Below are positions 17,293 through 51,312 of a stretch of 64,000 nt of DNA, in pieces (position 1 is the first letter of the stretch; each line of letters opens with the position of its first letter). The notes under the pieces were generated by a model, which searched no databases, had not been told where the DNA came from, and worked only from the letters and a program-made list of their open reading frames with translations. Both the position numbers and the translations under genes were made by a program. Origin of the DNA: Schmidtea polychroa (taxonomy: Eukaryota); assembly GCA_044892525.1 (NCBI GenBank), contig CM097885.1, forward strand, positions 247,504,001 to 247,568,000, read 5' to 3'.

Positions 17293-17538
17293 TGTGAGGA
17301 AGATTTAATTATTAGCACAATATAATATTATAATAATAAATTTACATCTGAATTATTACTATTAAGAAATTAACATATACATATATTAAAGTATTATATT
17401 CGTATTATATTATGGCGTACATAATTATTATTGTTATTTATAAATGCTTAATCGTCAATTTAATGATTTGTTTAGTCAAACCGATATTGTTATAGTTTTT
17501 GAATACAATTTGAATTCGACTTCTAGTTTTATTTAACA
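17293..17538 (+). repeat. 5' LTR (246 bp)
   Basis: TGTGAGGAAG...TTTAACA; no differences from 22217-22462 found by eye. Confidence 0.97.
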
Positions 17539-30479: not shown

Positions 30480-30700
30480 AATTACTTATAATATGTGATG
30501 TAACTGATATTGGTGAAACTCATTGAACTTTTCAGTCCTGATTCAATGAACACATTAAAAACAAAACTAGCAATTATCACGAACATTGGCAGAAATTACA
30601 CAAGAGCGTCCAATCTATAGATGAAACAAAATGTTAATTTCTAGAAGACGATTTAAAAATTCATTACAAAGATTAGTTTCCAAGAGTCATTTCATTAAAA
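30480..30700 (+). pseudogene. decayed Penelope GIY-YIG fragment
   Basis: DIGETH*TFQS*FNEHIK parallels YISETHRAFQTRLNEHVK at 24000-24070. Confidence 0.6.
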
Positions 30701-34320: not shown

Positions 34321-34625
34321 CAAAGAGAATTCAATAAAATACTATAACCTTTGATTAATTCATTGTTGAGATATGATTTTTTGTTGAAAAATACTTGCTT
34401 TGTGATGACCTACAACATATCAAAAGTTAATGTTTTCATAAAATACTTTTTAATCACCAAAGCTATTTAAAAAGTTGAAACACAAACCATTTGTATCGAA
34501 TTTTTCGTCCTTTCAGCGACATAATTTCATCATGGGACATGTGTGAACATTAAGCAAGATTTTTTAAATTTGAATTTTAAATATCTTTTCAATTTATATG
34601 ACAATACAGAATTTGATTTCATTAT

Positions 34626-36141
34626 AGTAGGTAGATGTGAGCCCCATGAATCAGTATGAGTTATCGCGCATATATACCCCCCCCCCCTTGCTGATAAGTT
34701 ATTGCGCGTTTGATCGATGAGTTATAGCGCATATATTGATTTTTAAGTGCAAAGTGCAAAATGTGCAAAATGTGCAAAATGTGCAAAATGTGTAAAATTT
34801 ATTCAGGTGTGCTTTTCTTACATTAAAGATTTCACCCAGACATTTTCCACGAAAAAAGATTTGTTATTTGTCGACACAGATTAATTTATATGAAATCAAC
34901 AAAAAGATTTCTTTTCAATATATATGTCACGTTTTTAAGGAATAATTTTTGGAACATTGGGAACCAAGTATATTTAGTCGAGACATCCTTAACAAAAAAG
35001 TTGCGTCTTGATTCAACTAAGAAGATTCTTTAATAAAGATCTCGAAAAATTTCTTGGTTCTCCTAGGAATTCAGAAAGTGTAATCAATCAATATTTTTGG
35101 GCTATCTTGAGAACGAGACATATTTAGTCGAGACATCCTTAACAAAAAAGTTCAACTAAGAAGATTCCGAAATAAAATCCTCGAAAAGTTTCTTGGTTCT
35201 CCCAGGAATTAAGAAAAGGTAAAATCAATCGATAATTCTCAAAAATTCGGCTATGTCCGAATGTATTATGAATTATCACGGATTTTGATTGATGAGTTAT
35301 TGCGCGTTTGATCGATGAGCTATCGCGCATATATACCCCCACCCCCCTACTGATGAGTTATTGCGCGTTTGATCGATGAGCTATCGCGCATATATACCCC
35401 CACCCCCCTACTGATGAGTTATTGCGCGTTTGATCGATGAGTTATCGCGCATATATTGATTTTTAAGTGCAAAGTGCAGAAAGTGCAAAATGTGCAAAAT
35501 GTGCAAAATTTAGTCAGATGTGCTTTTCTTACATTAAAGATTTCACCCAGACATTGTTCACGAAAAAGATTTGTTATTTGTCGACACAGATTATTTTATA
35601 TGAAAATCAACGAAAAGATTTCTTTTCGATATAAATTTCACGTTTTTAAGGAATAATTTTTGGAACATTGGGAACCAAGTATATTTAGTCGAGACATCCT
35701 TAACAAAAAAGTTGCGTCTTGATTCAACTAAGGAGATTCCGAAATAAAATCCTCGAAAAGTTTCTTGGTTCTCCCAGGAATTAAGAAAAAGTAAAACCAA
35801 TCGATAATTCTCAAAAATTCGGCTATGTCCGACGGACTTGAAATATTTTCAACCATTCTATTTATGACAGTGCATCGTAAAATTTACATATTTTGATTCG
35901 ACTTTCAGCTTTCTATAGTAGTTTTGAATGGAGATTTCAAATCTTTGTTCAAATGTATACTGTTATTGTGTCAACTATGAATATTTGTTTAAATAAACTC
36001 ATTTGATTAATATATAGAGCCAATATAAATAGAGATATTAATACCAATGTTTTTGTTTTATATGTAATTAAAATCAGAGATGTCGAATCTTTGTTTTAAA
36101 AATTATTTTTCGCGCGCAATTTAAAAAATATTTACTATTTC
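34626..36141 (+). repeat. left TIR (1516 bp) with internal duplications
   Basis: Reverse complement of 49704-51211 apart from a few indels and substitutions. Confidence 0.95.
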
Positions 36142-36573: not shown

Positions 36574-37023
36574 TTATAGTTTTTGTGAACCAATCAAATC
36601 ATTTACATCATTTATAATTTTGTTGACAATCCAATTATAATTTAGAGTTTTTAAACCAAGTACAACTATTTTTCCACTAGAAAACAAGTTTACACACAAG
36701 GGGTTATAAGATATGAGACGCAAACCCGGGAATATTTCTGGTTCATATACACATTTTGTTTTCTTTGACAAATATTGCAAATTAATTAGTTGTTTGATAT
36801 CAATAGTAATTGTACAAGATTGAAGATGAACATCTTTAATATTATAATGTATGCTTTCAATAGGTTTTTTGCAACCCATTATTCGACATTTCCCTGTCTT
36901 GAAGAATATAATTGTATAATTATCAGTTTTATCTATTATTTGCTGAGGTTTACCATAAGGAAAATTCATATTTTGTATAACTTTTAATGAAACCCGTCCA
37001 CGGTAATTAATATTTACTAACAT
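36574..37023 (-). CDS. TATA-binding protein (TBP)-like protein, 149 aa
   Basis: Two TBP repeats: LVNINY...IIFFKTGKCRIMGCK and LQSCTI...YEPEIFPGL...VNLFSSGKIVVLGLK, compared with TBP YEPELFPGL...LIFVSGKVVLTGAK. Confidence 0.88.
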   Translation of the reverse strand: MLVNINYRGRVSLKVIQNMNFPYGKPQQIIDKTDNYTIIFFKTGKCRIMGCKKPIESIHYNIKDVHLQSCTITIDIKQLINLQYLSKKTKCVYEPEIFPGLRLISYNPLCVNLFSSGKIVVLGLKTLNYNWIVNKIINDVNDLIGSQKL

Positions 37024-37180
37024 TATTGAAAATAATGGATAACTCTAGGTAATTATATTGATTATTTTAAATTTTAAATATTATTATGACAACCAAATTA
37101 TGATATCATAACAACACGATTTTTAAACAGAAACATTTATTTAATAAAAATAACATAAGATATTAACATACATAATTTCT

Positions 37181-37573
37181 TTATAATTTTCCACTTACAA
37201 TCTTCCATATAGGTAATATTGCTGTACTTGGCGCTATTTTATAACCTTGAATGCAAATTTTCATATTCCATTTAGCATTAGGTTTAAATGGGATTTGATT
37301 CTCGTCTTCATCATAAAATTTCGTTGATGGACCGCCTATGAATGAACCATTTTCATTAACTATAAGTTGCTTGTTGATTCGTCCAAATATTGTAGTAATC
37401 GCTTCTTGATCTTCTTGAGAGAATTCTTCAATCCAGTAATTGTAACTAGTTTTCACTAGTTCAACAGGAATCAACAAATTGTAATTGATCGGATTGACTA
37501 GTAAATGTATTTGATGCTCATGAAAAATATAAGTTGCTTTAAATAACGGTTGCTCATTCTTCATATTCAACAT
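37181..37573 (-). CDS. hypothetical protein, possible OB-fold ssDNA-binding protein (130 aa)
   Basis: ATG-started intact ORF; TKFYDEDEN...MKICIQGY...PIWKIV resembles the C-terminal strands of NCLDV/T7 gp2.5-type SSBs (recalled pattern, not searched). Confidence 0.5.
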   Translation of the reverse strand: MLNMKNEQPLFKATYIFHEHQIHLLVNPINYNLLIPVELVKTSYNYWIEEFSQEDQEAITTIFGRINKQLIVNENGSFIGGPSTKFYDEDENQIPFKPNAKWNMKICIQGYKIAPSTAILPIWKIVSGKL

Positions 37574-37728: not shown

Positions 37729-38163
37729 ATGAATGAATACATAATCGCCATTGTCAATGGTTTAATTTATAAAAGTGATGATCAAACAATAAATTGTTTA
37801 TTAAAAATAATAAAAGAAGTAGAGCTTCGATGTACCATTGATTTCTCTTCTATTTTATCATCGGAAGGTAATCAGGAAAAAACATTCAAGGATGTCTTTG
37901 AATCGTTGTTTGAGGATGGTATATGTTGGTCTAAAGTCATCGTTAGCTTAATGTATGTCAGAAACATTCTTATTTTATGCCCAAATGAACATCCAAAATA
38001 TATGAACTGGTCAGTGCAAGAAATTACAAAAATATACCCATGGATCAAAGAAAATGGTGACTGGAAATATATAAAAAAATTAGAGTTACATTTTTGGTTA
38101 AGAACTATGTTTAAACGTTTCATTATATTTTTTGTCAATTTAATAAAAATTTATAAACTTTGA
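37729..38163 (+). CDS. Bcl-2-like protein (144 aa)
   Basis: BH1-like LFEDGICWSKVIVSL (Bcl-2 family LFRDGVNWGRIVAFF), BH2-like WIKENGDW (WIQENGGW), hydrophobic C-terminal tail. Confidence 0.85.
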   Translation: MNEYIIAIVNGLIYKSDDQTINCLLKIIKEVELRCTIDFSSILSSEGNQEKTFKDVFESLFEDGICWSKVIVSLMYVRNILILCPNEHPKYMNWSVQEITKIYPWIKENGDWKYIKKLELHFWLRTMFKRFIIFFVNLIKIYKL

Positions 38164-38233
38164 TAGTTAATTTAACTTGCATCAAATTCATATTTATTAC
38201 TTACATATTAATAATAACATTCTAGATCAACCT

Positions 38234-38263
38234 AGAATGTTCTAGAACATTCTAGAACATTCT
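38234..38263. promoter_or_regulatory. heat-shock element with six alternating nGAAn units
   Basis: aGAAt gTTCt aGAAc aTTCt aGAAc aTTCt; further GAAnnTTC at 38341-38348 and TTCnnGAAnnTTC at ~38366-38378; TATATAA at 38354-38360. Confidence 0.75.
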
Positions 38264-38550
38264 AGTTGATTGGTAACAATAAATATTTAGATACAATAAT
38301 TAGTTATTATTTAACTATGAACAAAATCTATGAATAAAAAGAATATTCTTAGTTATATAAAAAAATTCTAGAAGATTCTATTTGGTTGTTAACAATAGTT
38401 GCTTAGATAATTAACTATTGTTTTAATATTACATTTGAATTTCAATTAATCAATTAATTTTTATCTAACAAGTAAGATTTTATTTTGCTCTTGTTAAATA
38501 TTTATTTTCTTTTCTTTCAGATATTATTCATTCAAAATAAAAGAAGAAGA

Positions 38551-38788
38551 ATGCCAAATATTAAAAAACAAACGGTAAACTTTATTTATTTAATATATAT
38601 ATTAAGTTTTTCGTTTAGAAAATATGTTGTGATATCGATCAAGGAAATGATATGGAAGATTTCTATGATACATGTAAGTTATAAATTTTTATAATAAATT
38701 AAATTTTAATTAAATACTATTTTTTTTTAATAAATTTTATAATAAGTTAAATGTTTTAGCCGCTTTTCATAATAATACATTTAAATTA
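38551..38788 (+). CDS. putative spliced micro-ORF (~35 aa, MPNIKKQTKICCDIDQGNDMEDFYDTSAFHIIHLN)
   Basis: Consecutive GT-AG introns at 38472-38520 (UTR), 38575-38618 and 38674-38759; coding status unproven. Confidence 0.35.
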
Positions 38789-39132
38789 ATTTTTTAATGA
38801 TGGTAATACGTTCCAGTATTAATTTTATATAATACAATTAAATTAATTTTTTAATGATGGTAATACGTTCCAGTATTAATTTTATAAGTTTCGATTCTAT
38901 GTTTAATTACAATAAGAAAAGCTTTCAAAATAAATTTCAATTTGTAAAATCGAAAACCCTTCAATTTAAATCAAAAATAACCGGTAATATTTTTCCAATT
39001 GCAAACTGGTTAACTAATCAAATAAAATTCAAATTCTATAAGTTTGAATTCTGCTTTAAATATTTTTGACTAAATTATATTACTTTTAACTTCAAGTAGC
39101 AAGCATATAATAAATTATTATTTATATGGTAA

Positions 39133-39316
39133 ATTGCTGACCGGACAGACAAAATAAATCCGACTAAGGGTACTTAGGGGTAGTCACCTGGGGTTGAAAC
39201 ATAGTCTATGACCTGTCCCGAGTCAAATGAGGGTCACGTGTAAAATTTCAGCATCCTAGGTCCGACGGTGGGGAATTCTATAGAAAACAAACAAACTTTC
39301 ATCTTTATATATTAGA
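39133..39316 (-). mobile_element. small Helitron-like (Lep1-type) insertion inside the Polinton
   Basis: Minus strand begins a/TCTAATATATAAAGATGAAAGTTTGTTTG and ends GTCTGTCCGGTCAGCAAT, resembling recalled ends of such elements; GC-richer than its flanks. Confidence 0.35.
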
Positions 39317-40101
39317 TTTAATTAAGGATTATTATTTTATATATATATATATATTTTTAATAAATTAAAATTGAAAAAATAGATACAAATCTTTGTGAAT
39401 TTGAGATTTTCTTTGAGATTTTCTCCATTGGGTGTCTTTTTAAAATATAATTAATATTATATTTAAACAAATTTAAACATAAATAATGTTTGTTTAAAAA
39501 AAAAATATCAAATGGTAAAAATGACAAAAACGGTAAAAATGTCAATTGTATCGTCTTATTTATAATATTAAACTAAACAACATTAATATTTTTTTAATAA
39601 ATTTTATAATAATTTTAATTTATTTTTAATATTATTAAAATAGTATAAACATTACAAGTTATTGTTTTTGCTATCATCAATACTCTATAGGAGACGCAAA
39701 GAATTCTTTATGTACCAATAAGAATACAATATTATTGATCTAGCTTTATTGCATACTTTCCATGGTACACTGGAAATCACATCACTTGCATAATAGCTTG
39801 GTCACAGAAATCTGTATTCACGTAAACATAAGGTATGAAATCATAATCACCTCTGTTGACTAAAAAAATAGTCAATACATAGAAACTGTTTACAAATGCA
39901 TCCGTTTACCTTTAGCATTTTTAACTTATAAAGTAATGGTTTTTTGTCGGATGTCTTACACTTGAATAAAATAAACTACACATTGTTTGTGATTATAAAA
40001 CTTTTTTCTCAAAATATATGGAACACAAAAGTGAAACCCGAATTATTTTAATAAAATAAAATTCATTTAATAAATATTTAAATCATTATTTATTTTAAGG
40101 T

Positions 40102-43100
40102 GTGTTATACCCAAATTATTGTCAAAACAGTAGTCACAATAAAAGCTGTCATAAAATCATGCAAACATATTATGGCAAAACATATTATCAACAAAATTAC
40201 TTTTTATGCCCATATTGCGAAACTTTAAGTTCCGATCCCTACATGTCCTTTTATAACACGCATAAGACACATTTAAATCAATTTGTGATGCGTAAAGATA
40301 AGCTTTTCAAAAGAAAGGTTTCCACTCACTTAATTAAAAATAAAAAAGCAAGATTGGAGAAAATAGAAAATACAATATCGAACTCAGAAATAATTGTAAT
40401 CATAGATTCGGAGGAAGAAGATTCGAGGCATGAAGAAACTGGAAGTTCAAGGCGCAACGAAGCAGGAAGTTTAAGGCGTGAAGAAGTTGGAAGTTCAAGG
40501 CCTGAAGATAAGCTTATCAAAAGAAAGGTTTCCACTCACTTAATTAAAAATAAAAAAGCAAGATTGGAGAAAATAGAAAATGCAAACTCAGAAATAATTG
40601 AAATCAAGGATTCGGAGGAAGAAGATTCGAGGCATGAAGAAGCTGAAAGTTCAAGGCGTGAAGACGCTGGAAGTTCAAGGCGCGAAGAAGCTGGAAGTTC
40701 AGGGCGCGAAGAAGCTGGAAGTTCAAGGCGCGAAGACGTTGGAAGATCTGAAGAAGAAGAAATTGATATAATAAATGGATCGTTTGAAATAATAGAAGAA
40801 CTAGATTTCAATGATCAAAACGAAAATATATCGAATGTTGACAGTGATAGTACTGACTATGCAGATCACTACTCACTAGTTGATGACTTTCAAACAGGAG
40901 CAGGAATATCAGATGAACCGGAAATTGAATGTGATTTATACAGAACACATAGAATTATCACACTGGACATATCTTGTTATAATATACAAAAAATAGTTAT
41001 TCCACCAACGTTGCTGATAAAATTAAACGCTTGTATAAATGAAATGAAGAGCGTTAAGATACAGTTCGAGATCAATGCAGAATTCGTCAAAGACGGTGAG
41101 CTGAAGACTGCAAGAATTTCAAACAGAGCCACAAAATTAACAGATGACTTTTTAGATGAAGGAATCGAAAGTTTGAATGAGAAAATTGCTATTAGATCGG
41201 AGTTGGGTAGCAGTTGGCGTCTTAACAGGATACTGGAGATTAATTTTAAAATAACAAAGTTTGCCGAAATTAGTCGATTGTCTGGACATCGACATATAAG
41301 AACCCGGCATCATTAAAGAATAAAATTATAAACATCCAAAATCAAGACAATCTGTGTTTTATCTACAGCGTTTTGTCTATATTGAAATACGAAGACATTC
41401 ATGAAAACCGTAACAGACCGTCACAATATTATCGGTACATGAATGAAGTAAATTACGATTCGGAAAACCCTCCGACAACATTGAATGACATAAAGAAATT
41501 TGAAGATCAGAATCCAGGATTGGCGATCAATGTTCTCTCATACGAGTCGGATGATACATATTTAAATAATGATGATGATGTTGTTATGAAACATCCGAAT
41601 ATAGACATAATTAGGAGGACAAAGGTTAAAGATGTTACACCAATATATTTATTATTACTAAGTGAAAGTAATAATTACCATTACGTTGGAATACCTAATA
41701 TCAACAGGTTAATGAACTGTCATGTATCCAATAATTGTACAGTTCGAATTCAATGTATATGGTGTGTAAATTGTCTAAATGGATTTCGGAGACAATTGAC
41801 ATATGAAAGACATCTGGCTTTATGTAAGAAAAATCAGCTTGGGACAACTTTGTACGTTATGCCAACAGAAAAAGAGCTCAGATTCAAAGATTGGTCGAAG
41901 AAAGTGACTCCACCTTTCGTAATCTATGCTGATTTCGAATCTATTTTACCAGACGATCAGCAATACCATCAGAAACACTTACCGATTTCAGCTGGACTTT
42001 TGCTGATAAACAATTTTAGCGGAGCTTCCTCATATTTTCAATTTATTGGGTTAAATTGTATATTTGATTTTTTAAAGAAAGTAGAGGAAATAGCAGAAAA
42101 TAAAGTAAATCATTATTACCAGAGAAATGGTAAACAACCTTTAATTCTCAGTCCAACGGAACAATCCTCTTTTAATATGCAATCATTTTGTTATATATGT
42201 AAGGAACACTGTGATCATTTGGTTCGAGATCATGATCATTTCAGCGGGAAATATTTAGGTGCGGCATGTGGAAAATGTAATCTTTCAAGAAGAGTACGTC
42301 GAGTGCTTCCAGTAGTATTTCATAACCTGAGAGGTTATGATATGCATCATATTTTAAAATATGGCATAAATAAATTCCCTCACTGGAATTTGAGTTGTAT
42401 TCCGACAACATCCGAAAAATTTCTTACGCTTATTGCGCATTGTAAGCAAATAAAGATCAAATTCATTGATTCATATCAGTTTGTAAATGAATCTTTGGAT
42501 AATGCAGTAAAAACAATAAACAGTTTACCAATTACAAATGCAGCATTTACGGGAACAATACAGGATTCAAAAGGTATTTTTCCATACAATTTTGCCACAA
42601 GCCTGGAAGTTCTACGAGAAACCAGAGAATTGCCACCAATTTGGGAAGGAGTGTCACAAGCCGCATATGATAAAGCAGTGAACATATGGTCTGAAACCGG
42701 ATGTGAAACCCTTTTAGACTATATGATGATATATCTAAAGTTGGATGTATATCTTTTAGCAGATTACTTTCAACAATTCAGAACTAAATCACTAGCCCAT
42801 AATGGATTGGAACCTTTAAATTTTTTCGGTATTCCGGGAATGACATGGGCATCGGCATTAATGTCATTGGATAGACCTATTGAATTGTTGCAAGATAATG
42901 AAATGTATAATTATTATGAAGCTGGCATTCGAGGAGGTATGACTTTCGTTAATAAACATCAAGTCAGAAGAGATGAAAATACAGAGTTATTATATATCGA
43001 TATAAATAACTTGTATGGATGGGCACTTAGTCAGAGTTTGCCATATGGAAAGTTTGAATGGATCCATACTGATTTGGACACTATTCTAGAAGAGTGTAAA

Positions 43101-44243
43101 TCATCAAACATAGAGAATTTACCATATGGATATACGTTGGAGGTTGATATGAATATTCCAGATGAAATTCATGATTTATTAGACGATTTACCTGTTGCAC
43201 CAGAGAAGATGTGTCCAGAAGGAACAAAAGTGGAAAAGCTTCTGTTAACACATTACCCGAAGAAAAACTATGTAATTCATTGGCGACTATTGAAAATGTA
43301 TATGTTTTTAGGAGTTGAAGTAACAAATATACATCGGGCAATCAAGTTTAACCAATCAACTATTTTCAAGGAATATGTGGAAGCCAACACCAAATTGAGG
43401 GCTCAATCAACATCTGAACTGGAGAAGGGATATTATAAACTATTAAACAACAGTTTATATGGGAAAACAGTGGAAAATTTAAAGAAGAGGATGAATTTAA
43501 GGTTGTGCAATTCACAAAGAAAAATGGTAACATATTCATCAAAACCAACCTTCAAGAGAAGTATAAAGATTGCAGATGATTTAATAGCTGCAATTATGAA
43601 CCCTGATGTTGTATGTTTGGATAGACCTTCGTATATTGGACAAACAGTTTTAGATCTCTCCAAACTAAGAATGTATGAGCTGCAGTATATAGAACTACAA
43701 AAGTACCGTGAACAGTTCAATTGTGAGATTAATATAGCAGCAGGGGATACGGATTCGTTCTTCTTGGAAATTAAGAATCTTAAATTGCAAACATTATTAG
43801 AAGCTATGATCCAAGATAATCTATTGGATGCATCTAATTATAATTCGTCTCATCCGCTGTATAACAGAAGATTAGATTCTGTTATAGGAAAGTTTAAGGA
43901 TGAAAGTAAGGGAGTCCTATATGATGAATGGATATTTCTTCGGCCAAAGCTTTATAGTTTGTTGGGTGGTCCAAAGAAAACTATTAAAGCCAAAGGTATT
44001 AGATTGAATGAAACTGAGATAGATCATCAATCATACATCGACTGTTTTAATGGAATGGAAATACCTAAAGTCATACAAACGAGGCTTGGGTCCAAAAATC
44101 ATCAACTTTACACATTTAAATCAACAAAGTTGGCTCTGTCAAATAAGGATGATAAAAGGGTATGGGTGGGTCGGAACAAAAGTTTTGCATATGGACACTA
44201 TAGTATAAATATTGTTGATAATGATGATAATATATTTGCATGA
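40102..44243 (+). CDS. polB: protein-primed DNA polymerase B, split by a one-base frameshift near 41303 (~1380 aa if joined)
   Basis: YIDINNLYG, KLLNNSLYGK and GDTDS motifs; endonuclease VII-like CYIC...RDHDH...ACGKCN insert; INIQNQDNLCF lies upstream of the 41373 ORF in the same frame. Confidence 0.95.
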
Positions 44244-44388: not shown

Positions 44389-44773
44389 CTAATATTTATT
44401 AAACTCAAAACATAACCAAACAATACAATGTTGTCCACATGTAACTGTTAGCGGTTCTTGATAACGAATTCTATTGTACACGATAGGTTTTGATAATTTC
44501 GACAACTTCGACACTAACAGAGGCGGATAATAGTAACCCATCGGATCAAACACTTTAATCTTTTCAGGTTTAACAAATACTGCTAGCCAATGTTCGCCAT
44601 CGAGACTTGATGATTGGGTATTGACTATTAAAGCATTGTTACTTTCAAGAAAAGGGATTTTATCCAGCGGATAAACTCCTAAAAACCTGTCTCCAAACAG
44701 ATTTGTTGCAATACAATTAAGCTGAACAGAACTAATCAAGTAAATCGTTTATTAGAAAGTAAACTTACTCCAT
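44389..44773 (-). CDS. adenain-like cysteine protease; predicted 5-nt first exon plus 37-nt intron (115 aa)
   Basis: GEHW, VFDPMG and YQ...TCGQHC catalytic motifs; ATG GA/GTAAGT...TTAG/T TCT GTT gives MDSVQL. Confidence 0.9.
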
Positions 44774-44803: not shown

Positions 44804-46033
44804 TTAAACTAGAATTGACCGATTTGCTGAAATCTGTATTTCGCTTTCAAAAACTCCATAAATAATTACATATACAGGAGATGTTAAAGCCTTGTTGAAT
44901 TTAATATCAAGTCTCAGATTTCCATTTTGTGGCAATTGACTTTGATTCCAATCAAAGTCTGAAGCCAAAATGAATGTAAAGAAAGGATATTTGGTCTTAA
45001 AATCTACAATGTCGATTCCGCAATTTAAATTCTTATCTAAATAACCCATATTTCGAACTATAGATTGCATATAGGTCGCAGCATAGTTATCGTTGTCGAA
45101 ATCTTGAGTATATGTCTCACGATAATCGGAATTTTTTGATAAAGTTAAAGAAGTTATACTGAAATGTGCGAATTTTGAGCTAGTTTCTGTATATGAACCA
45201 TTATATTGTGCTTCTGATTGGAAGGTTACAAGAATAAAATTTGGCAAACGTTTATCGCCAAATATTTGTTCTTTATAAAATGAGGATGAATCTTTACTTA
45301 TTGCAAAGGCAACAATTTCTTTGGTTTTGATAGGATAAATCGCATGTTGTGAATTAAGACCAATCTGATGGCCTGCCAACACTGATGACTCAACTCGTAC
45401 ACGGCTAACCATTAATTTTGCATCAACCAACTGATATTTTGGTGATGCTCCAGCTACAGATGTATCCAAACAAAATTTTGAGTCTGATCTCTTCATACGA
45501 ATATGTACATTGACTCCTGGTAGTAAATATTTAGGCTGATCCATAAAATCTAGTTGTAATGATGAACACATTGAAAACAGTCTTGATTTCGCAATCCATG
45601 TTTTCCTAAAATCTTTACTTCCATAACCCATCGGCGCAAGACAAATACTTTTTGTATCTCCGTTATAGTTTAAAATTGTTTCAATTAAAGCTTTGTGTGC
45701 ATATGTGTTGTTGCCACTTTCGATTTTGATATTATTAAAACCCAGAATAACATCTTTAAATAGAGTATGAAACATGTAGTTGGTTGGAATTACATCAACA
45801 CCATCTGCCAGATCTTTATTGTCTTTATCTACAACCTTCAGTTGAATGGATAATAGAGTGTCATTCAAATCTAAATATTCAGTCTGTGAACCGTTAACAA
45901 AAAATTCTACATCATTCCTTGAATCAGTAATTGAATTCATAGGAAATACATCTTCAAATATTCCATTTTCAATTACTACTTGTGGAGACGGACGATCAAA
46001 AATACACAATTCAGTTTTACCGGAGATCATCAT
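44804..46033 (-). CDS. double jelly-roll major capsid protein (409 aa from ATG 46033)
   Basis: N-terminal KTELCIFDRPSPQ, YLDLNDTLLSIQLKV and C-terminal GNLRLDIKF..L...V.VIIYG.FE match Polinton MCP. Confidence 0.92.
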   Translation of the reverse strand: MMISGKTELCIFDRPSPQVVIENGIFEDVFPMNSITDSRNDVEFFVNGSQTEYLDLNDTLLSIQLKVVDKDNKDLADGVDVIPTNYMFHTLFKDVILGFNNIKIESGNNTYAHKALIETILNYNGDTKSICLAPMGYGSKDFRKTWIAKSRLFSMCSSLQLDFMDQPKYLLPGVNVHIRMKRSDSKFCLDTSVAGASPKYQLVDAKLMVSRVRVESSVLAGHQIGLNSQHAIYPIKTKEIVAFAISKDSSSFYKEQIFGDKRLPNFILVTFQSEAQYNGSYTETSSKFAHFSITSLTLSKNSDYRETYTQDFDNDNYAATYMQSIVRNMGYLDKNLNCGIDIVDFKTKYPFFTFILASDFDWNQSQLPQNGNLRLDIKFNKALTSPVYVIIYGVFESEIQISANRSILV

Positions 46034-46406
46034 TTTCGAATATTGTTCCACGACCTTTCCATCTTTTGTTTATACGAGATTTTCGTCGCTTACTCAAAAT
46101 TTGTTGTGGTGTTGATGTTGGAGGTTTTTTAGTTTCATTTGGTTTAGAAATCTTTGCTGCACTTGGCATCAATTTCCCAATTTCATTCATTGCATGTCTT
46201 TTCAATGTTGGTAGTATTTTTTGATCTTTCATTACCACATCCTTTGCTGTTCTCATGCCAAATGAACCAATCTTTTTAAGTATTGGAAGTGCGAACCTTC
46301 CAATTGTTTGCAACCATCCGGATCCATATTGCTTACCCATAAAATATGGTAATTCTCCACCAGTTTGACTATTACTATATAACGACACAATATCAGGATA
46401 AGACAT
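46017..46406 (-). CDS. basic virion core / membrane-active protein with Gly-Gly-type cleavage sites
   Basis: QTGG and QYGSG followed by amphipathic WLQTIGRFALPILKKIG; Lys/Arg-rich tail; conserved position upstream of MCP. Confidence 0.7.
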   Translation of the reverse strand: MSYPDIVSLYSNSQTGGELPYFMGKQYGSGWLQTIGRFALPILKKIGSFGMRTAKDVVMKDQKILPTLKRHAMNEIGKLMPSAAKISKPNETKKPPTSTPQQILSKRRKSRINKRWKGRGTIFENDDLR

Positions 46407-47409
46407 TCACCTTTCGAAAATGTAAAGTCAAATGGGTTTTTGAATCTTTTGAAAAGTTTATCAATTTTCCAGAATCATCACGTATATTAATTTCTATATT
46501 GTTTATACATGATGTTGCAACAGATAAATACATAGGATTTTCAATCGTTATCTGTACCACTTCATCTTGTTCATGCTTTTCAACCCATACTGCTTTCATT
46601 AGAGGAACACTTACATCACCAACAATTACAGATTCAACAATATTACTATAAATGAACATTTGCTGATGAAGTTTAATTATTTTTGGTTTCGATGTTCCTT
46701 CGTTAACTTTTAAGTTTTGTATATACGTTTCTTTTGATAATCCTAATGTCTTTACCAAATTAGAGTCAAATTTCATTTGGCCAACATTCGGATTCATTTG
46801 AAATTTAAAAAATTTGTCTAATTCAACAACAGCGAAAATATCTGCACAATGTTTTGTTAAATAAACTTTTAATTGATCAAGATCTGTAATATACAAATCA
46901 TCTTGAAATGTATAGCTATGCTCAACAGCTTTGTTATACAAGAGTTGAAATTTGAATATAGCATCAGTTTTTGGAAGAGTATCAATATCAAATTTCACCG
47001 TTTCATCAAAAGTGTTACGCAATAGAGTAAATCCTAGGCGTTTTGCATCAGTTAAGGTTTCAAATAAAAATTGAAATGGTCGCTTCAAACATTGAAAGTA
47101 TAAATATCTATCCTCAACATATATTATCGCATTTGTATTTGCTTGATTGATCATTTCATAGCTATCTTGAATTATCTGCACTTTGACAATTTCTGATACT
47201 GATTCCATCTTGGTATATTCAATCTTGGATTTACTGTAAAACGGAAAGAGATTGTATACAAATGTAAAACCCAACAAGGACACTTCCCAACTACCATTTA
47301 AATAGATTGGATTTTGAAGTTCGACAATAAATTTACTGGCATTGTTATTTGGATGAATTAAAGGAGAGCTATTGGTGGGTAAAATCATGTAAAAATTAGT
47401 TTTATTCAT
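46393..47409 (-). CDS. penton (single jelly-roll minor capsid protein), 338 aa from ATG 47409
   Basis: FYMILPTNSS..HPNN.ASKF.VEL..PI.L.GSWEVSL at the N-terminus; YSNIVE..IVGD..PL and I.I.IRD..G..I.F at the C-terminus. Confidence 0.9.
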   Translation of the reverse strand: MNKTNFYMILPTNSSPLIHPNNNASKFIVELQNPIYLNGSWEVSLLGFTFVYNLFPFYSKSKIEYTKMESVSEIVKVQIIQDSYEMINQANTNAIIYVEDRYLYFQCLKRPFQFLFETLTDAKRLGFTLLRNTFDETVKFDIDTLPKTDAIFKFQLLYNKAVEHSYTFQDDLYITDLDQLKVYLTKHCADIFAVVELDKFFKFQMNPNVGQMKFDSNLVKTLGLSKETYIQNLKVNEGTSKPKIIKLHQQMFIYSNIVESVIVGDVSVPLMKAVWVEKHEQDEVVQITIENPMYLSVATSCINNIEINIRDDSGKLINFSKDSKTHLTLHFRKVNVLS

Positions 47410-48428
47410 TTCAACTGAGATTCCAGTATCCAAGTAGGGTTTTGATAACCATGCCATTTGACATAATATTGTTTATGCTTCCCTTTTCCTCTGGTCTTTA
47501 GAATTTCTTGTATTCTAAAAGTTGTAGGACTTGGAATAACTTGTAATTCTTGTTCATAAAATTTACCTATAATTTCATTGTTATCATAATCCTTAATGAC
47601 ATACATTATTGGACTCTGTTTAGTGTTAATCTTCGAAATTTGAAAAACTTCGTCGCTCCAATTACTATCAAAGTTTTTAATGAATGGAGAAGCACTAATT
47701 TTTGATATTCTTACATAATCACTGATTTTATATTTTGCTTTCTTGGGTTTTGGAACTTGTCGAGATAACCATAATTTGACTTGATTATCATTTGAAACAT
47801 CAACTGGTCTTAATCCATTTAAACCACGGTGCGAGGAATGATTATATGAATGAATCAGATTTTGTAAAACATGTATCCATGTCTTATTGCCTTGATGTAC
47901 AAAATACTTTTTCAATTTATCTCTCAATGTACGATTAAATCGTTCGACATAGGCTGCCTTATATTGAGAATGAACAGTGTAGTGATTTACATGATTTTCT
48001 TTTAGAATTTGTTTAACTTTACTGTTGTAAAATTCCTTACCCAAATCAGTTTGCAAATTATCGGGATGTCCATCAGCAAATAAACTCTTTATTGCTTGAG
48101 CAATTTCACTAGCAGATTTAGTTTTAACAGGTATAGCTCTCGCAAATCGGCTAAATATGTCAATACATGTTAAAATATATTTGTAACCTTTGTTGATACT
48201 GGAATATGGAATCATTTCCAACAAATCCGCTTGCCATAAATCATCAATACCAAATGTTTTATATGCTCTTGTTGGAAATCTTTTTAACATCGGTTTGTTG
48301 AGACTGTATGCAAGTTGGCTTGATAACCAATTTCTTGTCTCTTTCTTTGATTTCTTCATTGCTTTCTGTAGTCTGTCGATTCCGCCGAAAGATGCTGGGT
48401 CTCTTGGATTTGTCCAAATTTTCTCCAT
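47406..48428 (-). CDS. int: retroviral-like DDE integrase with C-terminal chromodomain (340 aa from ATG 48428)
   Basis: WQADL, IDIFSRFA, LQTDLGKEF, VERFNRTL; ILKTRG...YYVKWHGY..TWI chromodomain. Confidence 0.95.
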   Translation of the reverse strand: MEKIWTNPRDPASFGGIDRLQKAMKKSKKETRNWLSSQLAYSLNKPMLKRFPTRAYKTFGIDDLWQADLLEMIPYSSINKGYKYILTCIDIFSRFARAIPVKTKSASEIAQAIKSLFADGHPDNLQTDLGKEFYNSKVKQILKENHVNHYTVHSQYKAAYVERFNRTLRDKLKKYFVHQGNKTWIHVLQNLIHSYNHSSHRGLNGLRPVDVSNDNQVKLWLSRQVPKPKKAKYKISDYVRISKISASPFIKNFDSNWSDEVFQISKINTKQSPIMYVIKDYDNNEIIGKFYEQELQVIPSPTTFRIQEILKTRGKGKHKQYYVKWHGYQNPTWILESQLK

Positions 48429-48489
48429 TGCAACAATTTGAATTAAAATCAAGTTTGAAATTCGGTAATGAAGGACTACCACCCATTGT

Positions 48490-49092
48490 TTATGAACTTC
48501 GACTTCCTAATAAACCTGCTCCACCTAATAAAGATAATGCAAGAGGAATTAATGCAGCTATAAATCCTCCTTGTTGTTTATACATAATCTTTCTCATTTG
48601 TTTTTTGTTTTTGCTATTTACAAGTGATAGAAGCGATTTCTTGTGTTTTTCCAAAATATGTTTTCTTGCACTGCTTATATTTATCTTCCCATGTACAACT
48701 TTCATTATAATATCAAGTAAATCATCTATCACAAATGTAGGGAATGTTTGTAAAATTATCATTCTTGATTGTTTAGGAGCCTTCAACAAAGAATTAAAAT
48801 ATGGTAAGCTTCTTGGAATTTTGATTTTTCTAGATGCTATAAAATCTTTAGGTTTTTGTTTTGATAATTGAAACTCTTTTGGTTCAGTGTAACTGGTTTT
48901 CAGTGGAATTTTATTTGCAATTTTATTTGTAATTTTCCTCTTCTTACGCTTTGCAATCAAATTCTTCAATTTCTTTGAAGGTTTGATAATTACTTTTTGA
49001 AAAGACATTATTAATCTTTTCAAGTGATCAACTTTGTTTATATACTGTTGCACCGTTTTTGTTAAATATATCTGTTCGAACTCGTAATTCAT
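48490..49092 (-). CDS. basic Polinton structural protein ending QQGG-FIAALIPLALSLLGG (start may be ATG 49008)
   Basis: Lys-rich body with a C-terminal QxGG site and hydrophobic helix, as seen in Polinton core proteins. Confidence 0.7.
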   Translation of the reverse strand: MNYEFEQIYLTKTVQQYINKVDHLKRLIMSFQKVIIKPSKKLKNLIAKRKKRKITNKIANKIPLKTSYTEPKEFQLSKQKPKDFIASRKIKIPRSLPYFNSLLKAPKQSRMIILQTFPTFVIDDLLDIIMKVVHGKINISSARKHILEKHKKSLLSLVNSKNKKQMRKIMYKQQGGFIAALIPLALSLLGGAGLLGSRSS

Positions 49093-49651
49093 CCGAACAT
49101 TTTTGGGTAAAGTCTAGAAATAAATATCCATGGGGAATTTTAGTTGCATCTTGAAATGCTTCTAGTAGAAACTTCCTATTGTTTGGGTATGCTTGTCTTG
49201 CTAGAAAATCAATGACTGTTGCATCTCTAGGGTTTTTAAAAATTGTTAGATAATGTACATTTAAATTACGAGTTCTATGATTTCCTCCTTGATGGAAAAG
49301 ATTTTGGGTTATAAAAATAACTGTAACTCCAACATGTCTAGAAATCTTTGTAAACAAATTATTAAATTCCTTTTCTTTGTTGGCTTCTTGATATAAATCA
49401 TCAATGATGATGACATCTCTCTTTTGTAAACGTTTTGTCCAATCTTTATCAAACCCTTTTATAATTTTCATTTGTACTTTACAGAATTCTGAATGCGTCA
49501 AACCATTTTCAGTTTCTGAACCTCGATGCCAATATATTTTGTTGAATTTTTCAACAAACAAATTAGACTGAAGCAATTTACATACAAAAAGCGTTTTACC
49601 GCTTCCACTAGGACCGACAATTTGATAAACAGCTTCATTTTGTAATTCCAT
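49028..49651 (-). CDS. FtsK/A32-family genome-packaging ATPase
   Basis: Walker A GPSGSGKT, Walker B IIIDD, SRH..VTVIFITQNLF; TATATAAA on the minus strand at 49684-49677. Confidence 0.95.
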   Translation of the reverse strand: MELQNEAVYQIVGPSGSGKTLFVCKLLQSNLFVEKFNKIYWHRGSETENGLTHSEFCKVQMKIIKGFDKDWTKRLQKRDVIIIDDLYQEANKEKEFNNLFTKISRHVGVTVIFITQNLFHQGGNHRTRNLNVHYLTIFKNPRDATVIDFLARQAYPNNRKFLLEAFQDATKIPHGYLFLDFTQKCSDELRVRTDIFNKNGATVYKQS

Positions 49652-49703
49652 TTAAAAAGATGTACTACAAATATTGTTTATATAATGAGTCGAAAAACAT
49701 GTT

Positions 49704-51211
49704 GAAATAGTTAATATTTTTTAAATTGCGCGCGAAAAATAATTTTTAAAACAAAGATTCGACATCTCTGATTTTAATTACATATAAAACAAAAACATTG
49801 GTATTAATATCTCTATTTATATTGGCTCTATATATTAATCAAATGAGTTTATTTAAACAAATATTCATAGTTGACACAATAACAGTATACATTTGAACAA
49901 AGATTTGAAATCTCCATTCAAAACTACTATAGAAAGCTGAAAGTCGAATCAAAATATGTAAATTTTACGATGCACTGTCATAAATAGAATGGTTGAAAAT
50001 ATTTCAAGTCCGTCGGACATAGCCGAATTTTTGAGAATTATCGATTGGTTTTACTTTTTCTTAATTCCTGGGAGAACCAAGAAACTTTTCGAGGATTTTA
50101 TTTCGGAATCTCCTTAGTTGAATCAAGACGCAACTTTTTTGTTAAGGATGTCTCGACTAAATATACTTGGTTCCCAATGTTCCAAAAATTATTCCTTAAA
50201 AACGTGAAATTTATATCGAAAAGAAATCTTTTCGTTGATTTTCATATAAAATAATCTGTGTCGACAAATAACAAATCTTTTTCGTGAACAATGTCTGGGT
50301 GAAATCTTTAATGTAAGAAAAGCACATCTGACTAAATTTTGCACATTTTGCACATTTTGCACTTTCTGCACTTTGCACTTAAAAATCAATATATGCGCGA
50401 TAACTCATCGATCAAACGCGCAATAACTCATCAGTAGGGGGGTGGGGGTATATATGCGCGATAGCTCATCGATCAAACGCGCAATAACTCATCAGTAGGG
50501 GGGTGGGGGTATATATGCGCGATAGCTCATCGATCAAACGCGCAATAACTCATCAATCAAAATCCGTGATAATTCATAATACATTCGGACATAGCCGAAT
50601 TTTTGAGAATTATCGATTGATTTTACCTTTTCTTAATTCCTGGGAGAACCAAGAAACTTTTCGAGGATTTTATTTCGGAATCTTCTTAGTTGAATCAAGA
50701 CGCAACTTTTTTGTTAAGGATGTCTCGACTAAATATGTCTCGTTCTCAAGATAGCCCAAAAATATTGATTGATTACACTTTCTGAATTCCTAGGAGAACC
50801 AAGAAATTTTTCGAGATCTTTATTAAAGAATCTTCTTAGTTGAATCAAGACGCAACTTTTTTGTTAAGGATGTCTCGACTAAATATACTTGGTTCCCAAT
50901 GTTCCAAAAATTATTCCTTAAAAACGTGACATATATATTGAAAAGAAATCTTTTTGTTGATTTCATATAAATTAATCTGTGTCGACAAATAACAAATCTT
51001 TTTTCGTGGAAAATGTCTGGGTGAAATCTTTAATGTAAGAAAAGCACACCTGAATAAATTTTACACATTTTTGCACATTTTGCACTTTGCACTTAAAAAT
51101 CAATATATGCGCGATAACTCATCGATCAAACGCGCAATAACTTATCAGCAAGGGGGGGGTATATATGCGCGATAACTCATACTGATTCATGGGGCTCACA
51201 TCTACCTAACT
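49704..51211 (-). repeat. right TIR (1508 bp)
   Basis: Inverted copy of 34626-36141. Confidence 0.95.
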
Positions 51212-51312
51212 CATTATATTGATAGTTATCTTCTCTTTCCTACGGTGGAGAAGAGAGAATTTTCCAACTGTGGAGACACGAAACTAATTTGCATAAAGTT
51301 TTTATTGAAAAC

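Follow-up and report, generated by a model that had tools for sequence, protein, structure and literature searches.

The window analysed here, a stretch of 64,000 nucleotides taken as a whole, contains a freshly integrated Polinton of 16.6 kb that carries a gene for a protein related to the TATA-binding protein (TBP). The element is bounded by terminal inverted repeats (TIRs), whose arms are 99-100% complementary over ~1.5 kb and at whose tips ATATATA lies beside a C-run (Table 1). Both arms are flanked by the 8-bp direct repeat TCATTATA, the probable target-site duplication (TSD); the chance of such a match was estimated at ~1e-3. Polinton TSDs usually measure 5-6 bp, and the exact termini of the element are for this reason slightly uncertain. 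Together with the TIRs and the direct repeats, a family-B DNA polymerase (PolB), an rve integrase, an A32/FtsK-type packaging ATPase and a double jelly-roll (DJR) capsid fold identify a Polinton, the context already named in the first-pass annotation of the locus. No tRNA genes are present.

The capsid protein was recognised by fold only. Its profile gave no match among PDB sequences, whereas a Foldseek search with the AF2 model (pLDDT 89.5) returned the major capsid proteins of iridovirus, PBCV-1, Sputnik and mavirus as best matches, with E down to 8e-17. It is 53-65% identical to its relatives, the packaging ATPase 71-77%, and no relative of the capsid gene was found in IMG/VR. The PolB frame is split once, as the single-ORF polymerases of relatives (1148-1395 aa) match two frames in tblastn, which reflects either one frameshift or a small intron. 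The small conserved ORF probably starts within the listed interval, because the versions in relatives measure 104-124 aa, and the 354-aa ORF possibly encodes a minor capsid or penton protein. The 130-aa ORF next to the TBP-like gene matched nothing in Pfam or PDB and is transcribed divergently from the Bcl-2-like ORF; in relatives L005-L008 the Bcl-2 gene lies directly upstream of the TBP gene. Bcl2 homologs have been noted in adintoviruses (Starrett et al. 2021, PMC8502044).

Table 1 Features of the Polinton and its putative promoter words (positions in the window).
Feature	Position	Strand	Remarks
Left direct repeat TCATTATA, 8 bp	34619..34626		1 nt outside TIR
Left TIR	34628..36141		~1.5 kb; internal 61-nt and 9-nt tandem repeats; C-run near tip
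TBP-like gene	36574..37023	minus	149 aa, two-lobed minimal TBP; lobe 1 ~1-62, lobe 2 ~63-149
TATA-like word TATAATTA	37050..37057	minus	34 nt before TBP start codon; ordinary TATA variant, presumed promoter element
130-aa ORF	37181..37573	minus	kept beside TBP gene in relatives
Bcl-2-like ORF, 144 aa	37729..38163	plus	PF00452, E 1.1e-7, 32.7 bits (cut-off 31.4)
Protein-primed family-B DNA polymerase	40102..44243	plus	PF03175, E 5.9e-34
116-aa conserved ORF	44389..44739	minus	counterpart in L040 (assembly GCA_031406105.1): faint Peptidase_C5 (adenain) match
DJR major capsid protein	44804..46033	minus	409 aa from ATG; AF2 and Foldseek
129-aa virion-module ORF	46017..46406	minus	conserved in relatives
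TATAAACA site	46067..46074	minus	41 nt before capsid start codon
354-aa virion-module ORF	46393..47457	minus	conserved; three tandem paralogs in L005
TATAAACA site	46500..46507	minus	101 nt before 129-aa ORF
rve integrase with C-terminal chromodomain	47406..48482	minus	PF00665, E 1.1e-11; Chromo weak, E 0.0017
Small conserved ORF	48490..49092	minus	
TATAAACA site	48575..48582	minus	upstream of integrase region
A32/FtsK-type packaging ATPase, 207 aa	49028..49651	minus	PF04665, E 1.4e-8
TATAAACA site	49035..49042	minus	upstream of small conserved ORF
TATAAACA site	49675..49682	minus	31 nt before start codon of ATPase, the first gene inside right TIR
Right TIR	49704..51208		from inverted-repeat comparison
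Right direct repeat TCATTATA	51211..51218		2 nt outside TIR

The TBP-like protein and its family

As the first-pass annotation had it, though with no strand given, the TBP-like gene is an intact, intronless ORF. It runs from ATG to TAA without an internal stop, and its 149 residues match those of relatives from first to last. The protein matched the Pfam family PF00352 (TBP) at E 1.9e-14, its 53.7 bits lying above the cut-off of 22.9, and all 35 significant matches in a PDB sequence search were TBPs, with solved TBPs at E 5e-11. What HMMER aligned was residues ~64-140, i.e., lobe 2, which matched each of the two repeats in cellular TBPs; lobe 1 (residues 1-62) was never aligned to TBPs by HMMER, either as a single sequence or as a profile. 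Profile-profile comparison linked lobe 1 to canonical N-lobes (E 1.8e-5) and to lobe 2 of the same protein (E 0.01). AF2 predicted a two-lobed TBP saddle with pLDDT 95 and pTM 0.84. The best 44 Foldseek matches of this model in the PDB were all TBPs (167-177 columns, TMq 0.69-0.75), followed at ranks 45-46 by weak matches to RepDE. The earlier claim that both TBP repeats are present is borne out by fold and profile-profile comparison, while HMMER sees the second repeat only and the first is shortened: in the model, lobe 1 is without the long helix H2 and its H1 region is short. Judged by sequence and predicted structure, the Polinton ORF encodes a genuine but minimal TBP-family protein.

Lobe 2 is canonical, with a Y-E-P-E-(I/L)-F-P-G stirrup, both Phe residues and an F-S-S-G-K strand. 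The short motifs quoted in the first-pass annotation are found at residues 39-41 (IFF), 93-96 (YEPE), 97-100 (IFPG) and 113-116 (LFSS), and its description of the DNA-binding face was accurate. Of the four DNA-kinking Phe that mark the TBP family, three are kept (F41, F98 and F114) and the first site of lobe 1 is occupied by K25/P26; the central Asn position of lobe 2 is Ser69, and an N-terminal extension is missing. In addition, Arg47 and Met49 stand where canonical lobe 1 has its DNA-facing Val and Thr. The roles of the Asn and Thr residues on the concave face of TBP are textbook knowledge; in the Polinton TBP the canonical minor-groove Asn/Thr pairs are incomplete, with N4 as the probable counterpart of the canonical lobe-1 Asn in a register deduced from strand boundaries. 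Like other TBPs, the protein may bind and bend TATA DNA.

In human TBP, E284 and E286 form the adapter for TFIIB and Brf, and a basic cluster on H2 of the N-lobe serves as a common dock for TFIIA, Mot1, TAF1 and Brf1/2 (PMC7221094). The acidic adapter site is present in the Polinton TBP as E94 and E96, a putative contact for TFIIB, and the H2 basic cluster is absent.

Around 40 relatives share 43-62% identity with the protein, and an exhaustive search retrieved 55 clusters of the family at E<=1e-30. Residue counts were taken over 95 full-length members, and the derived deletions and substitutions are common to at least this number of full-length relatives. The adapter glutamates, which align to the E-P-E of solved TBPs, are kept in 90/95 (E94) and 93/95 (E96) members, F41 and F98 in 94 each and F114 in all 95. 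The non-canonical DNA-face residues are similarly invariant (R47 94/95, M49 95/95, S69 92/95), and N4, N6 and N112 also belong to the DNA-contact positions that are as conserved as the stirrup; Cys46, Cys51 and Cys110 are conserved as well. Across the family, K, P or T takes the place of the first lobe-1 Phe, adjoining an invariant Pro, and the lobe-2 Thr position is Leu in 55 and Thr in 16 of the 95 members. The linker between the lobes measures 11-19 aa in most members, against ~33 residues over the corresponding stretch of a solved TBP.

Wherever the genomic context of a relative was informative, it was that of a Polinton carrying PolB, rve integrase and A32 ATPase, and this held even for lineages in which the capsid protein shows no more than 41-45% identity. 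The divergence of the TBP (43-51%) falls inside the range of the element core genes. For nine intact TBP genes we obtained pS values of 0.60-0.95, pN values of 0.32-0.54 and dN/dS ratios of 0.13-0.50; the ORF stayed intact in all nine sampled elements although synonymous divergence is saturated. The gene is under purifying selection. We read it as encoding a minimal, element-specific TBP that belongs to the standard gene set of one Polinton clade. The gene may be of eukaryotic, archaeal or giant-virus origin: profile scores against archaeal, microsporidian, plant, yeast and human TBPs all lie at 54-79 bits with no clear preference, and the lobes are short and saturated.

A strand-specific, putative promoter word upstream of virion genes

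In an unbiased 8-mer test over 66 upstream windows from four elements, TATAAACA/ATAAACAA ranked first with 20-21 matches (p ~5e-21). Sites of TATAAACA lie at -31 to -42 from start codons in 18 of 26 cases, typically at ~34 nt, and they precede the ATPase and capsid genes in all four elements. The 99-101 nt spacing seen before the 129-aa ORF recurs in L001 and L005. Upstream of the TBP, Bcl-2, integrase and PolB genes of the four elements no TATAAACA was found, with the exception of one site 112 nt before the PolB ATG of the window. In 27 further loci, 98 sense sites stood against 3 antisense sites, and elements of 33% and 42% GC showed ratios of 7/0 and 8/0. Position 7 of the motif is C in 94 sense sites, compared with A in 13, T in 8 and G in 6, and C in 3 antisense sites. 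The 94 exact matches compare with at most 13 for any one-mismatch neighbour, in elements of 31-42% GC. Counted over the whole window, the word is not enriched, either as a 9-mer (7 against 4.6 expected) or as an 8-mer (14 against 11.3 expected); the signal lies in how the sites cluster inside the element, in their strand and in their spacing, a pattern that recurs in relatives. This strand-specific placement ~34 nt before virion-gene start codons across the clade is new here.

A TATA-like word of some kind stands 30-42 nt ahead of the ATG at every promoter of the element; for accessory genes including TBP it lies at ~-30 to -34. No TATAAACA occurs within 150 nt upstream of the TBP gene, where an ordinary TATA variant, TATAATTA, is found instead. 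With a TATA word ~34 nt from the start codon, and if the usual ~30 nt to the start site hold, the mRNAs would be almost leaderless, a difficulty for the role proposed below.

The possibility that TATAAACA marks the 3' end of the gene before it, in the manner of a poly(A) signal, was considered and rejected, because the word also stands before genes that are first in their array (the ATPase of the window and of L005, the 91-aa gene of L001 and the 154-aa gene of L002) and because, where two genes overlap, it is found ahead of the previous gene's stop codon.

All contigs of sufficient length had the TBP gene, and those in which it was missing were too short for a judgement. The association of gene and motif was thus observed in a set made up of TBP-bearing elements. 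TATAAACA includes a perfect TATAAA core, and the title of PDB entry 1qn3 names canonical TBP in a crystal with the adenovirus TATA box in its C(-25) variant. Owing to these two facts host TBP alone could serve the TATAAACA promoters. The 3' part, ATAAACA, also matches the forkhead-factor consensus, so that it could be read by a host factor.

Possible roles of the Polinton TBP

To our knowledge, Polintons/Mavericks have been assumed to depend wholly on the host for transcription, and no mechanism is known to us for the switch by which silent integrated copies begin to make virions. A Polinton element may carry its own transcription start factor. We propose that the Polinton TBP serves the element as its private initiation factor for late genes, using host TFIIB and Pol II, a reading of sequence and model that we regard as evenly poised between right and wrong. 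The first-pass annotation had suggested a viral initiation factor with altered specificity, and this is the best-supported reading, on circumstantial evidence. It is favoured because the DNA face has been rebuilt in lobe 1 but hardly varies, the adapter glutamates are kept, and a private, strand-specific TATA-like word exists.

We infer DNA binding, the assignment of lobes to half-sites, TFIIB recruitment, timing and escape from regulators as follows. Host machinery would transcribe the TBP gene from its ordinary TATA-like box. The protein would then bind TATAAACA ~31-42 nt before the start codons of ATPase, capsid and other virion-module genes. Lobe 2, with its two Phe and the E-P-E stirrup, might occupy the TATA half and recruit host TFIIB and thereby Pol II, while lobe 1, with Lys, Pro or Thr in place of one Phe and with Arg47 and Met49, might read the 3' half containing the C. 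This assignment follows the orientation in canonical TBP-TATA crystal structures, which is textbook knowledge, and the predicted model. Devoid of H2 in lobe 1, the protein could escape TFIIA, TAF1/TFIID, Mot1 and Brf1/2, and so start virion genes independently of TFIID and free of regulation. Where the TBP gene sits inside the element differs among relatives, so that its putative early status derives from the promoter type only.

Alternatively, the protein might be a general TBP substitute that acts at all element promoters or widely in the host nucleus and contributes no more than TBP activity free of regulation, with TATAAACA being read by host TBP or a forkhead protein. The TATA-like words of the accessory genes, the canonical core of TATAAACA, the tolerance of canonical TBP for C at this place (1qn3 title) and the retained TFIIB adapter would all fit. 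Left unexplained, however, are the non-canonical yet near-invariant R47, M49 and S69 on the lobe-1 DNA face, as well as the use of one exact 8-mer with strict orientation and spacing. Forkhead-type sites usually function in both orientations and at variable distance, which speaks against a forkhead reading. We consider a general substitute unlikely.

The restriction of TATAAACA to virion genes could also point to a repressor or latency factor, which would occupy the word, block host TBP/TFIID and keep the integrated virion genes silent; devoid of the TFIIA/TAF1 surface, it would fail to bring about productive initiation itself. Capsid genes of integrated elements must stay quiet, and the loss of H2 from lobe 1 removes a surface for positive cofactors, too. 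Yet near-invariant E94, E96 and F98 are needless for a pure blocker. For basal transcription, TBP, TFIIB and downstream factors suffice and TFIIA and TAFs are not needed, which also counts against this reading. A repressor is distinctly unlikely in our view.

The first-pass annotation had also considered a decoy that titrates host TFIIB or other TBP partners off host promoters. The kept TFIIB-adapter motif and the small size of the protein, which has no further domain, agree with this idea, but F41, F98, F114, N4, N6 and N112 are as conserved as the stirrup and would be needless for a soluble decoy. Since the H2 surface used by TAF1 is lost along with those for TFIIA and Mot1, the protein would not mimic TBP toward TAF1/TFIID, TFIIA or Mot1, and we judge a decoy quite improbable. 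Very improbable is a non-transcriptional DNA bender shaping replication-origin or TIR architecture or serving genome condensation and packaging: ATATATA does lie beside the C-run at the TIR tips, and TBP-like folds occur in non-transcription proteins, as the weak RepDE matches recall, but no distinct site was seen to be enriched in the TIRs and the sequence likeness is specifically to bona fide TBPs (the 35 PDB matches), including the polymerase-adapter stirrup. A recent, decaying capture of host TBP, for which only the ultimate source of the fold in cellular TBP speaks, is excluded by an identity of at most 31% to the nearest canonical TBPs against 43-62% inside the family, by derived features shared across the breadth of that family, by ORFs kept intact under selection and by co-divergence with the element core genes.

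Extending the proposed late-gene initiation factor to a whole programme is a bolder step, whose chances we put somewhat short of even. One Polinton clade would then run a two-class, virus-style transcription programme, in which a private general factor, the smallest known two-lobed TBP, has kept the TFIIB adapter, shed the host-regulation surface and redirects host Pol II to TATAAACA on virion genes. If true, no basal transcription factor encoded by the element itself would have been described for Polintons/Mavericks before this one. A minimal TBP that is clade-wide and under selection, together with a private promoter word on virion genes, would offer a testable handle on the Polinton switch, and gene and TATAAACA can serve as simple markers of the clade in genomes and metagenomes.

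Comparison with known TBPs and TBP-like factors

Cellular TBPs (PF00352; 1ytb, 1cdw, 1ais) share with the Polinton protein the two-lobed saddle, the canonical lobe 2 and the second lobe-1 Phe (F41). Their core comprises ~180 aa compared to 149 aa, and the Polinton protein differs by the absence of H2 in lobe 1 and of an N-terminal extension, the loss of the first lobe-1 Phe, Arg47/Met49, Ser69, a lobe-2 Thr that is mostly Leu, and by being encoded by a mobile element. TBPL1 (TRF2/TLF) likewise has no N-terminal extension and an altered DNA-contact residue in the N-lobe, a Trp at N.L5.1, and is thought to read non-TATA promoters (PMC7221094). It retains most lobe signatures and both H2 helices (PMC7221094), whereas the Polinton TBP keeps Phe at N.L5.1 (F41), is altered at other DNA-face residues and has its N-lobe H2 deleted; none of our searches gave a TBPL1-specific affinity.

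The first-pass annotation knew of no TBP in Polintons, which is nearly right. One figure label precedes our finding: the legend of Fig. 5 in Starrett et al. 2021 lists a 'TBP' gene, 'similar to TATA binding proteins', in MELD viruses, the carrier being a midsize linear dsDNA virus or element with an adintovirus-like PolB (PMC8502044). The label stands there by itself, sequence, structure, distribution and promoters not being analysed, and it may or may not denote the family described here.

The likeness to UL87/BcRF1/ORF24 of beta- and gammaherpesviruses is one of mechanism only, an analogy. In these viruses, a virus-supplied TBP-like factor reads a variant TATA on late (virion) promoters; the factors are large and multidomain and contact Pol II directly in a multi-protein complex, unlike the Polinton TBP, which has a TFIIB-type adapter and consists of the two TBP lobes and nothing more. 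No sequence match to UL87/BcRF1/ORF24 that would indicate homology was obtained, and fold matches to BcRF1, U58 and UL87-type proteins were weak (ranks 29, 31, 37 and 42; E 1e-3 to 1e-2, TMq 0.35-0.47). If the proposed late-gene role is true, the Polinton TBP would be a convergent counterpart of the herpesvirus late-gene factor.

TBP-like proteins of giant viruses (Nucleocytoviricota) are a further case of a virus-encoded TBP fold, and the best matches in a viral structure library came from Heterosigma akashiwo virus, Terrestrivirus, ChoanoV1 and an ASFV-like B263R homolog (E 1.7e-8 to 1e-4). Giant-virus TBPs act together with an RNA polymerase that the virus itself encodes, an enzyme that Polintons lack. 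The giant-virus proteins are longer (~190-500 aa), only 10-17% identical to the Polinton TBP, and have lost the signatures of the TFIIB adapter and of regulator binding (PMC7221094), whereas the adapter glutamates of the Polinton TBP are near-invariant. The Polinton TBP thus represents a natural dissection of TBP, a DNA saddle and polymerase adapter without the regulatory N-lobe surface, in contrast to giant-virus TBPs, which kept DNA binding and lost the adapter.

A two-lobed TBP-like protein with a remodelled first repeat

The first-pass annotation had proposed, from the sequence alone, that the Polinton encodes a homolog of the TATA-binding protein (TBP). The predicted gene was borne out as a complete open reading frame, and the YEPE, IFF, IFPG and LFSS motifs were all found in its translation as quoted. 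The 149-aa protein scored 53.7 bits against the Pfam TBP model (threshold 22.9, E 1.9e-14), and a sequence search of solved structures returned TBPs as the only significant matches, the best being archaeal (E 5e-11). In HMMER searches using either the single sequence or a family profile, only residues ~64-147 aligned, to both repeats of cellular TBPs. By sequence search alone, the protein therefore resembles one repeat joined to an unassigned N-terminal half.

An AlphaFold2 model built from 29 family members was very confident (pLDDT 95, pTM 0.84). When this model was used in a fold search of the PDB, the best 44 matches were all TBPs (TMq 0.69-0.75), with alignments of 167-177 columns spanning the whole saddle. 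Profile-profile comparison matched residues 1-62 to canonical N-lobes (E 1.8e-5), canonical C-lobes (E 6.6e-5) and the protein's own lobe 2 (E 0.01), confirming at the level of sequence profiles that this half is a diverged TBP repeat. In the model, lobe 2 shows the full strand-helix-strands-helix pattern and ends in a 16-residue helix H2 (130-145). In lobe 1, the last strand (45-51) is followed by 11 residues without a long helix before the first strand of lobe 2 begins (63-75), compared with ~33 residues between the equivalent points in a solved TBP. The helix missing from lobe 1 is H2, which in eukaryotic TBPs carries a basic cluster contacted by TFIIA, TAF1, Mot1, Brf1 and Brf2 (PMC7221094).

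Residues were counted over 95 full-length family members. Lobe 2 keeps its Phe pair (F98 in 94/95, F114 in 95/95) and its stirrup (E94 in 90, P95 in 87 and E96 in 93 of the 95). In alignments, E94 and E96 fall on the E-P-E of solved TBPs; TFIIB and its paralogs bind human TBP through E284 and E286 (PMC7221094). Lobe 1 retains its second Phe (F41 in 94/95), and the site of its first Phe is occupied by K, P or T adjoining an invariant Pro. Canonical TBPs present a DNA-facing Val and Thr 6 and 8 residues past the position of F41; here these sites hold Arg47 (94/95) and Met49 (95/95), in a register set by family-profile and profile-profile alignments to canonical TBPs. In lobe 2, Ser69 (92/95) stands in for the central Asn, and the Thr position is mostly Leu. 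The DNA face is changed mainly in lobe 1. Since the changed residues are as strongly conserved as the canonical ones, the pattern agrees better with an altered yet specific DNA-reading surface than with decay. Three cysteines of the window's protein, C46, C51 and C110, have no counterpart in canonical TBPs and are conserved in 75, 67 and 86 of the 95 members, respectively.

The host element and its relatives

A 16.6-kb element carries the TBP gene, immediately interior to its left arm. The terminal inverted repeats (TIRs) are identical apart from a small indel, which implies that the element inserted very recently. They are internally repetitive, with a 61-nt unit present 2.7 times and the 9-nt GTGCAAAAT 4-5 times, and carry ATATATA followed by a C-run near the tips. 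The element codes for a protein-primed PolB, an rve integrase with chromodomain and an A32-type packaging ATPase. A search for sequence matches between its 409-aa protein and annotated proteins found none; the model of this protein (pLDDT 89.5) folds as a double jelly-roll major capsid protein (MCP), with iridovirus, PBCV-1, Sputnik and mavirus MCPs as the best fold matches (E down to 8e-17). Compared with its relatives, the PolB reading frame is interrupted once, by a frameshift or small intron, and the other core genes are in a single frame and nearly full length. The element is thus a young, nearly intact Polinton.

Features of the window (L-numbers are contigs of relatives carrying related elements)
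Feature	Position	Strand	Observation
ORF with weak Mos1-type HTH match	6523-7104	-	probably a mariner-like transposase remnant, judging by the match
Inverted, not direct, repeats flanking the Ty3/gypsy-type element	near 16320-16647 and 26575-26957		~150 nt, 82-84% identity
Ty3/gypsy-type retroelement	17538-22249	+	gag with zinc knuckles; 1175-aa pol with protease, RT, RNase H, integrase
252-aa ORF	23875-24633	-	weak GIY-YIG nuclease match (E 0.0028); near retroelement
114-nt inverted repeat	23963-24076 with 30490-30603
TIRs	34628-36141 and 49704-51208		~1.5 kb; 99-100% complementary
8-bp direct repeat TCATTATA	1-2 nt outside each TIR tip		probably the target-site duplication
TBP gene	36574-37023	-	ATG to TAA, 149 aa
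130-aa ORF	37181-37573	-	adjoins TBP gene; conserved in L001, L002, L005, L012, L014 at 20-34% identity
Bcl-2-like ORF	37729-38163	+	Pfam E 1.1e-7, just above threshold; near TBP gene
AT-rich stretch of the element	38164-40101		1.9 kb; almost no ORFs; small tandem repeats, e.g., 57 nt x2 at 38772-38886; no match to relatives' proteins; single TATAAACA site at 39644-39651 (+)
Five private-word sites	46067 to 49682	virion-gene strand
354-aa virion-module gene	46393-47457	-	single in window, L001, L002; matches three tandem paralogs (329, 345, 332 aa) in L005, 3961-6985
Integrase region with short other-frame ORF	47406-48486	-	ORF overlaps integrase 5' end; conserved in window, L001, L002, L005; may be a shared small intron, alternative start or overlapping gene

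A word-indexed search retrieved ~40 proteins of ~145-155 aa with 43-62% identity to the TBP-like protein; the next matches were canonical-length TBPs at only 31% identity. An exhaustive profile search gave 55 clusters at E<=1e-30 and 722 at E<=1e-10, and 95 of the proteins retrieved matched the family profile end to end. All informative contigs of relatives (L001, L002, L005-L008, the contig of protein P0031, L009, L012, L014, L036, L039, L040 and L041) lay in Polintons with PolB, rve integrase and A32 ATPase. They include the ~16-kb contigs L005-L008, which recur across many samples, and the distant TBP members L036 and L039 (~34% identity). Also included are L040 and L041, with capsid proteins that share only 41-45% identity with that of the window; L040 derives from a genome assembly at NCBI. 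Between elements, TBP identity (43-51%) is within the spread seen for core genes (capsid 53-65%, PolB 49-61%, 354-aa protein 27-38%). The position of the gene varies. In the window, TBP and the ATPase gene occupy opposite ends; in L001, L002 and L039 the TBP gene immediately precedes the ATPase gene, and in L040 and L041 it sits downstream of the gene for the capsid protein. Nine TBP genes compared were all intact despite saturated synonymous sites (pS 0.60-0.95, pN 0.32-0.54, dN/dS 0.13-0.50 where computable). On these comparisons, TBP is a clade-wide Polinton gene.

Recent capture of the host TBP, which the first-pass annotation had named as a refuting case, is rejected by the higher identity within the family than to canonical TBPs, the clade-wide occurrence and the intact genes at saturated pS. 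The metagenomic relative L009 holds the sole non-intact copy among those examined, broken once into two ORF pieces.

The 130-aa ORF adjoining the TBP gene had no match in Pfam or PDB, and its product might partner the TBP-like protein. In L005-L008, a Bcl-2 gene (9398-9775) lies directly upstream of TBP. The Bcl-2-like gene suggests that the host is an animal and that the accessory module counters apoptosis.

A candidate promoter word upstream of virion genes

Reading upstream regions of the four elements first compared, we found TATAAACAA before the ATPase gene in 4/4; as this word was picked post hoc, independent motif tests were run. Every 8-mer in the region from -60 to -10 relative to 66 gene starts, taken from four elements, was scored in an unbiased enrichment analysis; TATAAACA and ATAAACAA ranked far above all others (20-21 hits, p ~5e-21). 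This private word lay 31-42 nt before the start codon in 18 of 26 sites (mode 34), and a second group of sites was located ~100 nt before a gene of 129/102/114 aa in three elements. In each of the four elements, the word stands upstream of both the ATPase and the capsid gene. None was found in these elements upstream of TBP, Bcl-2 or integrase genes, nor upstream of PolB genes, the one exception being a site in the window, 112 nt before the ATG of PolB.

Among 27 further metagenomic relatives, the word preceded the capsid gene by ~40 nt in 23, and 98 sites were on the gene strand vs 3 on the opposite strand. Elements of 33% and 42% GC had 7/0 and 8/0 sites (gene strand/other). Over 13 elements, the variable position of TATAAANA was C 94, A 13, T 8 and G 6 times on the sense strand and C 3 times on the antisense strand; no one-mismatch neighbour of the word exceeded 13. 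ATAAACA also matches the forkhead consensus.

The word as a 3'-end signal of the preceding gene was rejected on two grounds. Genes that come first in their array have it upstream too (in the window the ATPase gene immediately within the TIR; the L005 ATPase, the 91-aa gene of L001 and the 154-aa gene of L002), and where two genes overlap, it is found before the stop codon of the earlier gene is reached.

The TBP genes' own TATA words are ordinary, of TATAATTA, TATAAATAG or TATATATA type, at similar distances. Judged by its upstream words, the element has two promoter classes. For both gene classes in all elements, TATA-like words stand only ~30-42 nt before start codons. With such short spacing, either the 5' leaders are very short or the distance to the start site is unusual; at the usual TATA-to-start distance, a spacing of 34 nt to the start codon would leave the mRNAs almost leaderless.

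Proposed initiation mechanism and comparison with known systems

Based on the two promoter classes, the canonical adapter lobe and the remodelled other lobe, we propose a mechanism in three parts. The TBP gene would be expressed by the host machinery from its ordinary TATA promoter. In canonical TBP-TATA structures, the C-terminal lobe lies over the 5' TATA half and the N-terminal lobe over the 3' half. With this orientation carried over, canonical lobe 2 would sit on the TATA half of the word and the remodelled lobe 1, with Arg47 and Met49 and without its first Phe, on the AACA half, which holds the C setting the private word apart from generic TATA boxes. The protein would then nucleate initiation at TATAAACA promoters via putative binding of host TFIIB and Pol II and, as the N-lobe H2 is absent, would act without TFIID and TFIIA and beyond Mot1-type removal. 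We consider such private initiation, with the gene-motif link seen among TBP-bearing elements, an evenly balanced proposition. Host TBP alone may serve these promoters, since the word includes a perfect TATAAA and a crystal structure (1qn3) has a plant TBP bound to the adenovirus TATA box in its C(-25) variant.

Full-text literature searches for a Polinton or MELD-virus TBP returned only Starrett et al. 2021 (PMC8502044) and its preprint, where TBP is a figure-legend label without analysis; this paper also mentions Bcl2 and IAP homologs in adintoviruses. Given this label, the existence of a Polinton TBP gene is not strictly new; new here are the family definition, the minimal architecture, the clade-wide conservation and the associated promoter word.

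Giant-virus TBPs lack the signatures of both the TFIIB adapter and the regulator surface (PMC7221094); in contrast, the Polinton protein retains the TFIIB adapter and drops the regulator surface only. We would expect this combination for an element dependent on host Pol II for want of an RNA polymerase of its own. Beta- and gamma-herpesviruses possess a TBP-like late-gene factor, which is the nearest functional analogy to the Polinton TBP. As herpesvirus late-gene factors were matched only weakly in the fold search with our model, the likeness is one of analogy, not membership.
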